A stretch of DNA of 64,000 nucleotides from Macrostomum lignano (lineage: Eukaryota). This document shows, in pieces, positions 1,358 through 3,258 of the stretch. How positions within the stretch are numbered: the first letter of the stretch is position 1; every line of letters starts with the position of its first letter. The position numbers were made by a program, and so were the translations under genes. The stretch spans positions 62,001 to 126,000 of the forward strand of contig NIVC01002504.1 in NCBI GenBank assembly GCA_002269645.1, in the 5' to 3' direction. Under the pieces are notes generated by a model, which saw only the letters and a list, made by a program, of their open reading frames with translations, was not told where the DNA came from and ran no database searches.

Positions 1358-3258
1358 ATGTCGACTGCAAACTTGGCAACAGAAAAAGCCTCAACAACAA
1401 GCCAGCAAAGCGGCAGCCTGTTGCCAAGCCAGCAGCAGTCATCGAAGTCGGCCATCGACACTCTCGCCGCTGATGATTCGCGAATTCAATCGATTTTCGC
1501 CTACGGATCCTGGATCTGGAAGCCGCACTTTCGCTACAAGGAGCTGGCGATTGGCATAGCCTTGGGCTTTTCTAGACAGCTTTTCCAGGGCTCTTTCCAG
1601 GACTACGGCAGGCCCAGCTGGGTGAGGCTGCCGGCTGATTGGCTGGCTGGTGATTGCAGGCTGGTGATTGGCTGAGAATTGGAGGCTGTTGACTGGCTTC
1701 CTGGGAACTGCAGACTATTGATTGGCTTGGGATTGGAAGCTGCTGATTGGCTGGCTGGGGATTGCAGGATATTGGCTGGGGATTCTGTTGATTGGCTGGC
1801 TGGGAATTGCAGGCTGCTGATTGGCTGGAGATTGAAAGCTGCTGATTGGCTGGGGATTGTATTCTGCTGATTGGCTGGCTGGGAATTGCAGGCTGCCGAT
1901 TGGCTAGGGATTGAAAGCTGCTGATTAGCTATGGATTGGGGGCTGCTGATTAGCTGGCTGGGGATTGCAAGCTGCTGTTAGCTGGGATTTGCAGGCTGAT
2001 GATTAGCTAGTCAGCTGCTGATTGGCTGGGGATCGCAGGCTGCTGATTGGCTGACTAGGAATTGCAGACTGCTGATTGGCTGACTAGGAATTGCAGGCTG
2101 CTGATTGGCTGGGAATTGGGGGCTGCTGATTGGCTCGCTGGGAATTTTATAAAAATCAGTCCTTTCAACCACTTCCCTCAAACAGCCCGGTCGCATAGCA
2201 ACCATCGTACCCAACCCGGACTCCGGCGTCCTCGGCTGCCTCTACCAACTGAGCCGCCGCCATGCTATCGAGGACATTGCCAGAGCTGACGCTCACCAGG
2301 CAACCAGGGGCTTCCACAGGAGCCAGCTGGTGGTAGAGAACTGCACCACTGGCAAGACTGAAACTTGTTGGGTGTACATTGCTAGGAAGGAAGAAGACAA
2401 TCCGTATTGGCTGGGCAGGGCGGAGCCCAGTGAGATCGCTTTTCAGGTGAGATGATAGATAGATAGATAGATAGATAGATAGATAGATAGATAGATAGAT
2501 AGATAGATAGATAGATAGATAGATAGATAGATAGATAGATAGATAGATAGATAGATAGATAGATAGATAGATAGATAGATAGATAGATAGATAGATAGAT
2601 AGATAGATAGATAGATAGATAGATAGATAGATAGATAGATAGATAAGATTGACTGACTGACTGACTGACTGATGAAGTGATTGATTGACTAATACGATCT
2701 CCACTCTCAACTGCGCCAAACGCCCAGGTGTCACAGGCCAGCGGCAGCCGCGGTCCGAACCTGGATTATGTTCGCCGTCTGGTGGACTTCGTCCGCCTGC
2801 AGACCCGCGGGGTGATCGATCGCGACCTCGACACGAAACGGGTGCTGCGATTGGCCACCAGCGAAAACTCCAACGATCAGCGACTGCAATCTCCTCCTCC
2901 TTCGCAGCAGCAGCAGCATTTGGAATACAAGAGGGAGCGAGAAGATGACCGGGACAAGTCCACGGTGTTTCTGGTGCGCGAGGAGATGCTCAGCCAGATG
3001 GGAGGTCGCTCCTCCGACGATGCTGGGCGACGTCGCACCGGCCACCGGAATCACCGGGATCACCAACGAATTTCGGCGGAACACGAGGAGCCACCAAAAG
3101 TGTCGACTGGCCACGCGGATACGAAAGAAGCGAATAAAAAAAGAAAAAGAAAGCCAAAAAGGATAAGAAAAGAAAGTCGCGCGAGAAAATTTGAAAGCGA
3201 TGATGACATTGTGGGGGAGAGTGGACGATTAACTATGCGGACTAACAGTGAAAATTAA
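1358..3258 (+). CDS. CHAC-like: ChaC-family glutathione-specific gamma-glutamylcyclotransferase homologue, 3 exons (1358..1621, 2186..2446, 2728..3258), about 351 aa
   Basis: IFAYGSWIWKPHF ~ IFGYGSLxW; GFSRQLFQG ~ GYSRRFWQG; PGRIATI ~ PGRVVTL; VYIA...NPYWLG ~ AYVA..NPGYLG; GSRGPNLDYVRRLVDF ~ GxSGxNxEYLxxLxxF. All introns are GT-AG, phase 0. Confidence 0.9.
1625..2140. repeat. Degenerate GCTGCTGATTGGCTGGCTGGGA-type minisatellite filling ChaC intron 1
   Basis: The motif CTGATTGGCTG recurs throughout the intron. Confidence 0.85.
2454..2673. repeat. (GATA)~48 followed by a short (GACT)n microsatellite in ChaC intron 2
   Basis: Directly visible; the source of the LSIY pseudo-ORF. Confidence 0.97.

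Follow-up and report, generated by a model that had tools for sequence, protein, structure and literature searches.

Does a ChaC-family gene that has lost the codon for its catalytic glutamate still encode an enzyme? This question is raised by a locus in the flatworm Macrostomum lignano, within a stretch of 64,000 nucleotides that we refer to as the window (NCBI GenBank assembly GCA_002269645.1, contig NIVC01002504.1, positions 62,001 to 126,000 of the forward strand). ChaC enzymes control the turnover of cytosolic glutathione (GSH) and figure in research on stress responses, ferroptosis and cancer. Dead paralogues are common across enzyme families. A sequence-only reading of the window had proposed that the gene encodes a ChaC homologue with a natural Glu→Gln exchange at the catalytic position, and had put it forward as a candidate GSH-binding pseudoenzyme. 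Our analysis indicates an intact and divergent second ChaC gene, whose product would keep the gamma-glutamylcyclotransferase (GGCT) fold but is missing both the glutamate that serves as general base and several of the residues that bind substrate. The explanation that we favor, to which we give about an even chance of being right, is that of a divergent, non-catalytic ChaC-fold paralogue existing beside a working enzyme.

By homology and by predicted fold, the window protein is a member of the ChaC family. The Pfam ChaC profile (PF04752) matches residues 46-209 over profile positions 3-166 of 176, with E=1.5e-29 and 103.7 bits against a cut-off of 21, and an exhaustive HMMER search of 1.84 billion representative proteins yielded 864 homologues at E<=0.001. 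Its top relatives of solved structure, as judged by sequence, are human ChaC2 (the best match in the PDB, E=1.6e-18) and yeast Gcg1. An AlphaFold2 model, built on the homologue alignment, has a predicted local distance difference test (pLDDT) score of 93.1 and a predicted template modeling (pTM) score of 0.88. When this model was compared with known structures by Foldseek, chains of human ChaC2 ranked at the top (TM 0.89 and a root-mean-square deviation of 1.7 Å for 6KY1_A), yeast Gcg1 gave a TM of 0.85, and GGCT and GGACT matched more weakly. The protein is thus predicted to adopt a GGCT-type fold.

The gene consists of three exons on the + strand (see the table), which splice to an uninterrupted frame for 351 amino acids. 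An M. lignano model in UniProt, A0A1I8J4P5 (235 amino acids), is 100% identical to the window protein over all three exons and reproduces both splice junctions (GRPSW/PGRIAT between exons 1 and 2, IAFQ/VSQASG between exons 2 and 3), which confirms the exon structure. The ATG at 1358 is the earliest one downstream of an in-frame stop, and exon 1 is followed by a GT donor at 1622. Exon 2, which reads PGRIATIVPNPDSGVLGCLYQLSRRHAIEDIARADAHQATRGFHR..., is bordered by AG at 2184-2185 and by GTGAGA at 2447, and exon 3 carries the GxxGxNxxY motif, in which Tyr189 is encoded at 2767-2769. The frame, both GT-AG introns and the glycine, proline and asparagine residues that shape the fold are all intact. 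In these respects the sequence-only reading, which had called a ChaC homologue with exon 2 at 2186-2446 and with sound frame, splice sites and fold motifs, agrees with the family alignment, the open 351-codon frame, the AlphaFold model and the Foldseek matches to ChaC2.

The central claim of that reading concerned two codons in exon 2, CAC (2294-2296) for His125 and CAG (2297-2299) for Gln126, which were said to stand where ChaC enzymes have Arg-Glu. The domain was aligned with its 148 best homologues using MAFFT. The column of His125 in this alignment holds Arg in all 148 homologues, and that of Gln126 holds Glu in 147 of the 148. A separate alignment of nine sequences gives the identical register, with His-Gln opposite Arg-Glu, and the gapless alignment with CHAC1 on which the claim was based also holds for CHAC1 of Anolis (P0220), where WGVAYELRGDQVAASLKYLNVREAVLGGY faces LGCLYQLSRRHAIEDIARADAHQATRGFH and the P0220 stretch reads ...KYLNVREAVLGGY. 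Gln126 lies 21 residues from the invariant Gly105, and this is also the modal Gly-to-Glu spacing (80 of 144 homologues), while other registers imply spacings that are absent from the family (22 then 4, or 23). The His-Gln register also preserves the pattern of the helix: Ile119 and Ala122 occupy the two Leu columns, and Asp123 stands where the family has Asp or Asn. This register is therefore the best supported, and in it Arg-Glu is indeed replaced by His-Gln.

Three other comparisons caution against reading the register too strictly. A hidden Markov model (HMM) built from the 148 homologues slides it by one, placing Ala127 opposite Glu with a posterior of about 0.6-0.7; phmmer against human ChaC2 slides it by two, placing Thr128 there; and BLASTP against the canonical M. 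lignano paralogue (see below) gaps out the catalytic position altogether. DSSP strings from two AlphaFold models, one of the canonical paralogue (helix 95-111, with Glu109) and one of the window protein (helix 112-127), pin the catalytic position only to within one residue. The register is thus uncertain by one or two residues, because the residues that should anchor it have themselves been lost. Its exact placement does not alter the outcome: the segment D123-A-H-Q-A-T-R-G130 (2288-2311) contains no acidic residue past Asp123, which is an ordinary Asp of the family, so the catalytic Glu is absent whichever register is adopted. A Glu→Gln exchange is the most parsimonious description of the change at the catalytic site. 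The window protein accordingly lacks the general-base Glu found in glutathione-specific gamma-glutamylcyclotransferases (EC 4.3.2.7; CHAC1 Glu115, ChaC2 Glu83, Gcg1 Glu116), and presents one of the features of a pseudoenzyme, an essential catalytic residue lost from an otherwise intact homologue.

Could the glutamine codon itself be an error? M. lignano assemblies are repeat-rich and based on long reads, and one copy of this gene is frameshifted, as would suit an artefact of sequencing, assembly or gene modeling at the catalytic codon. The divergent gene is represented in UniProt by three models (A0A1I8J4P5, A0A1I8F7Z9 and A0A1I8G6P8), all of which contain ADAHQ. A0A1I8G6P8 is identical to the window except for an internal omission and may be the same locus, but A0A1I8F7Z9 (P0003) clearly corresponds to a separate one, with several frameshifts relative to the window, and its agreement at the catalytic codon makes a sequencing error there unlikely. 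Moreover, about a dozen further conserved positions differ from the family, a pattern for which a single-base error cannot account. We therefore consider an artefact very improbable. Where A0A1I8F7Z9 is in frame, its sequence shows 100% identity to that of the window protein, while its other segments match alternative frames, and this model may be either a decaying duplicate or the product of indel errors in a long-read assembly.

The departures from the family are not limited to the catalytic pair. In 40 columns, conservation reaches 80% or more; the window protein agrees with the family at 27 of these, whereas the lowest-scoring of the 148 homologues matches 34. Within AYGSW, Y49-G50-S51 are present, Trp52 is unique among the 148 homologues and Ala48 is seen in 12 of them. 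The columns of Asp82 and Tyr83 in QGSFQDYG hold His in 138 and Arg in 147 of the 148, respectively; both motifs had been singled out as deviating from GYGSL and QGxxxHRG, and both are present as described. The pocket tyrosine, found in 141 of the 148, is replaced by Phe131 in the MAFFT register and by His132 in the gapless CHAC1 register. GSH is proposed to be held in human ChaC2 by Y6, G7, S8, residue 34, H39, R40, Y87, Y109 and Y144 (PMC7022552), where residue 34 is Glu34 in print and Gln in the sequence. Six of these nine contacts are kept in the window protein, as Y-G-S, Gln77, Tyr152 and Tyr189, and three are changed (H39→Asp82, R40→Tyr83 and Y87→Phe131/His132), so the full set of GSH-contact residues is not found. 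With Arg→Gln74 and Arg→His125 included, four basic side chains are gone from the pocket region and one Asp has been added to it.

The loss of the catalytic Glu together with substrate-binding residues suggests that the window protein most likely no longer cleaves GSH. An alternative is that it is still an enzyme, with His125, Glu117 or Asp118 (all on the same helix) as the base and with a pocket that, through Asp82, Tyr83, Gln74 and Trp52, takes another gamma-glutamyl compound. Several joint changes in the pocket of a well-kept fold, with the Y-G-S motif, Gln77, Tyr152 and Tyr189 retained, look like respecification of this kind. Glu117 lies nine residues before Gln126, the same spacing as between Glu74 and Glu83 of ChaC2. 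For that enzyme an alternative catalytic role was proposed for Glu74, and its E83Q mutant still degraded 27% of GSH in vitro, compared to 59% for the wild type, or about half the wild-type activity (PMC7022552). However, every characterized GGCT-fold enzyme relies on a conserved Glu (GGCT Glu98, GGACT Glu82, Gcg1 Glu116, CHAC1 Glu115) (PMC7022552), and the Arg-Glu pair is invariant in 147-148 of the 148 homologues. In human CHAC1 Glu115 is essential, and the E115Q and E115A mutants are dead in cells, leaving cellular GSH unaffected (PMC10072464), which accords with the earlier statement that Glu→Gln inactivates at this site. On balance, an altered but active enzyme seems unlikely.

A protein without activity could nevertheless hold GSH, as the sequence-only reading had envisaged, and serve as a sensor, a buffer or a dominant-negative. 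A comparison is offered by human ChaC2 (PDB 6K95; E74Q, 6KY0; E83Q, 6KY1), of whose engineered E83Q form the window protein is a natural look-alike. The E74Q/E83Q double mutant of ChaC2 binds GSH with a Kd of 2.7 uM, whereas the wild type turns GSH over (PMC7022552), and the six contacts retained in the window protein would favor a similar capacity. Unlike the window protein, though, the ChaC2 mutants retain His39, Arg40 and Tyr87, and the window protein has two more residues than ChaC2 between the catalytic position and the next strand. With the equivalents of these three contacts replaced, two more conserved arginines lost and an Asp introduced, weaker binding would be expected for a ligand that carries two carboxylates. 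The original proposal thus divides: its non-catalytic part stands as the best reading, while its GSH-binding part is weakened by the changes at precisely those positions that the GSH-trapping E→Q mutant keeps. We regard a GSH-binding pseudoenzyme as doubtful.

With human and vertebrate CHAC1 (catalytic Glu115), the window protein can be aligned without gaps between the invariant Gly and the region of G-G-Y, at identical spacing (21 then 6), and the two share the Pfam family, the Y-G-S, P-G-R and N-x-x-Y motifs and the glycines. Unlike CHAC1, the window protein has His-Gln for Arg-Glu, Asp-Tyr for His-Arg, G-F-H for G-G-Y and Trp for the Leu of YGSL; identity is about 30%, and the window protein carries additional low-complexity extensions at both termini. 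Yeast Gcg1/YER163c (PDB 5HWI, 5HWK), GGCT and GGACT share the GGCT fold but, in contrast to the window protein, use the conserved catalytic Glu, and their sequence similarity is more distant. Only one other of the 148 representatives lacks the catalytic Glu, a 293-amino-acid protein from a JGI environmental contig (P0086), which has R-L for R-E (EHRLQVLGGY) and GYGAL for GYGSL. Glu-less variants therefore occur at under 1% among these homologues. P0086 differs from the window protein in that it retains H-R-G and G-G-Y, and the two are not related in detail.

The enzymatic role could be filled by another gene. A canonical M. lignano ChaC, A0A1I8H9W6, came to light among those homologues in which rare residues of the window protein recur; a search with a canonical ChaC profile showed no canonical M. 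lignano protein among the best 120 of 1542 matches. GYGSL, RRFYQGS, HRG, PGRVATL and SEREARLGGY are all present in A0A1I8H9W6, which belongs to the same family as the window protein, is 35% identical to it over 185 residues and has a model pLDDT of 93.0. This paralogue would do the enzymatic job, and the divergent copy would be kept as a ChaC-fold protein with no catalytic role, one to which a ligand or a partner binds. Within the window, tblastn with the protein found no second copy of the ChaC-like gene. In two further canonical models, A0A1I8ILN3 and A0A1I8G4C7 (P0057, P0284), 8-9 residues (VWHRGTPDL), including His-Arg-Gly, are missing; these are present in A0A1I8H9W6, and the gap is probably a gene-model or assembly difference.

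The existence of a canonical paralogue also raises the possibility that the divergent gene is a redundant duplicate no longer under selection, either a young pseudogene whose frame is still intact or a dying copy left by a recent genome duplication in M. lignano. In keeping with this, the A0A1I8F7Z9 model is frameshifted, no orthologues were found outside M. lignano, and the terminal branch of the window protein is the longest among the 149 sequences (0.91, against a median of 0.37). A0A1I8H9W6, by contrast, has every canonical residue and an ordinary branch of 0.43. Placement in a neighbor-joining tree failed, as the protein joins an environmental sequence by long-branch attraction.

The way in which the divergence is distributed argues for a different history. 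The conservation deficit is restricted to the most conserved columns; where conservation is 25-60%, the agreement of the window protein with the consensus is as good as that of canonical proteins (ratios 0.92-1.15), a pattern that does not look like uniform decay. In a neutral simulation of point substitutions, without indels, at the level of replacement seen at conserved columns (28%), the 351-codon frame remained free of stops in only 1 of 400 runs. Together, these two results indicate that the bulk of the divergence arose while the frame was kept open; it is far too large for neutral build-up in an open frame. The gene also has intact splice sites and, overlapping its stop, an AATAAA hexamer. 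A very recent death following a long functional history is possible. Taking both sides together, we judge an unselected duplicate to be improbable, and we infer, from indirect support of this kind, that the divergent copy may be maintained by selection.

Several observations weigh against a maintained, non-catalytic paralogue as the explanation. Among the 1.84 billion representative proteins there is no orthologue of the divergent copy outside M. lignano, where no relative exceeds 38% identity, and in word-indexed protein searches both the full protein and the domain matched only the three M. lignano UniProt models. The cluster of the canonical M. lignano ChaC contains UniRef members only, from which it appears that the collection probably holds no Macrostomum transcriptomes, so the lack of orthologues says little. 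Exact look-ups of P0001, of the exon-3 open reading frame (ORF) and of the exon-1 read-through ORF in public assemblies returned no match. The UniProt entries for the divergent gene are predicted gene models, and the frameshifts in A0A1I8F7Z9 may reflect assembly error or real decay. The high pLDDT stems from an alignment of canonical homologues and is no proof that the window sequence itself folds. Glu117 stands at the spacing of ChaC2 Glu74, His125 might, in principle, supply the base, and the corresponding ChaC2 E83Q mutant, as noted above, is partly active in vitro. Finally, the replacements are not significantly concentrated in the set of pocket positions defined a priori (4 of 9, against 9 of 31 elsewhere; Fisher p=0.31). 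Given this enrichment test, we make no claim of pocket-specific changes.

If the paralogue is indeed non-catalytic and retained, its C-terminal tail offers a hint to its location. The basic stretch KKRKRKPKRIRK suggests nuclear targeting, and a divergent copy with this tail would possibly be nuclear; the UniProt models end at residue 251, and past this point the tail, including the basic stretch, is known from the open frame alone. A more far-reaching version of this idea is that a nuclear ChaC-fold pseudoenzyme, maintained by selection, took on a new role in macrostomid flatworms, in which it would sense or bind GSH or a different gamma-glutamyl ligand, or would regulate canonical ChaC. We consider this version quite unlikely; were it true, the protein would be the first natural non-catalytic member of the ChaC/GGCT fold with a function of its own.

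At its 5′ end, the gene holds a further hint, in this case to expression. The first codon of the UniProt models is immediately preceded by an AG that may serve as a trans-splice acceptor. The M. lignano spliced leader (SL; 35 nt) has an ATG at its end (PMC8629364), and if joined at this AG to the codons CAA-AGC-GGC, the trans-spliced mRNA would read ATG-CAA-AGC in frame. Translation might then possibly start as Met-Gln-Ser-Gly, 16 codons 3′ of the genomic ATG.

Our literature search for a natural catalytically dead ChaC, an inactive ChaC paralogue or a Macrostomum ChaC found no relevant paper. If the gene is expressed and conserved, its product would be nature's equivalent of the E→Q mutants made in the laboratory and would give access to roles of the fold other than catalysis. 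The name given in UniProt, glutathione-specific gamma-glutamylcyclotransferase, is a transfer by homology that the residues do not support. The significance of these findings is limited in that they concern one species, that dead paralogues are no rarity among enzyme families, and that function is not shown by sequence.

Features of the ChaC-like gene and of a retrotransposon in the window (positions count from the first nucleotide of the window)
Feature	Position	Strand	Remarks
Exon 1	1358-1621	+	Residues 1-88; disordered S/T/Q-rich N-terminus, then start of ChaC domain
AG	1404-1405	+	Directly 5′ of first codon of UniProt models, Q17 (CAA, 1406); possible SL trans-splice acceptor
AYGSW	1499-1513	+	Residues 48-52; family motif GYGSL
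QGSFQDYG	1586-1609	+	Residues 77-84; family QGSxxHRG; His→Asp82, Arg→Tyr83
Intron 1	1622-2185	+	GT..AG; nearly all ~25-bp minisatellite (1644-2135)
Exon 2	2186-2446	+	Residues 89-175; PGR motif, central strands, helix with catalytic position, Tyr152 strand
CAC CAG (His125-Gln126)	2294-2299	+	At invariant Arg-Glu site (catalytic Glu)
Gly130-Phe131-His132	2309-2317	+	Family G-G-Y or G-Y; pocket tyrosine (ChaC2 Tyr87) lost
Intron 2	2447-2727	+	GT..AG; contains (AGAT)49 microsatellite, 2450-2645
Exon 3	2728-3258	+	Residues 176-351 plus TAA; end of ChaC domain, then charged low-complexity tail of ~130 residues
Basic stretch resembling a nuclear localization signal, KKRKRKPKRIRK	3136-3171	+	Residues 312-323; putative function, from composition only
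AATAAA hexamer, resembling a polyadenylation signal	3257-3262	+	Overlaps TAA stop; read from sequence
Conserved-column changes, residues 45-83			Trp→Ser45, Gly→Ala48, Leu→Trp52, Arg→Gln74, Phe→Leu75, His→Asp82, Arg→Tyr83
Conserved-column changes, residues 92-131			Val→Ile92, Leu→Ile95, Leu→Ala122, Arg→His125, Glu→Gln126, Tyr→Phe131 (His132 in CHAC1 register)
Integrase	21899-22897	-	Long terminal repeat (LTR) retrotransposon pol
End of reverse transcriptase, RNase H	23342-24169	-	LTR-retrotransposon pol
Aspartyl protease, start of reverse transcriptase	24176-25579	-	LTR-retrotransposon pol

Both introns of the ChaC-like gene are largely made up of tandem repeats. The minisatellite in intron 1 comprises about 19 copies of its unit and includes nine exact copies of CTGATTGGCTG, where 0.08 would be expected by chance; this sequence occurs nowhere else in the window and corresponds to a CCAAT box when read on the opposite strand. 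Most of intron 2 is occupied by its AGAT microsatellite. Taken as a whole, the window abounds in such repeats, with 22 rows (overlaps included) scoring over 200 in Tandem Repeats Finder (TRF), examples of which lie at 11333-11641, 11982-12384, 13910-14322, 20166-20887, 31223-31771 and 40293-40773.

Scans with Rfam and for tRNAs found no RNA genes in the window. Long open frames that have no Pfam match are located at 7151-8620 (+; 489 amino acids), 35957-37252 (+; 431 amino acids) and 44951-46303 (-; 450 amino acids). Pieces of an LTR-retrotransposon pol gene lie on the - strand at 21899-25579, where G+C content (59-64%) is higher than anywhere else in the window, and their distribution over separate ORFs suggests that the element is broken.

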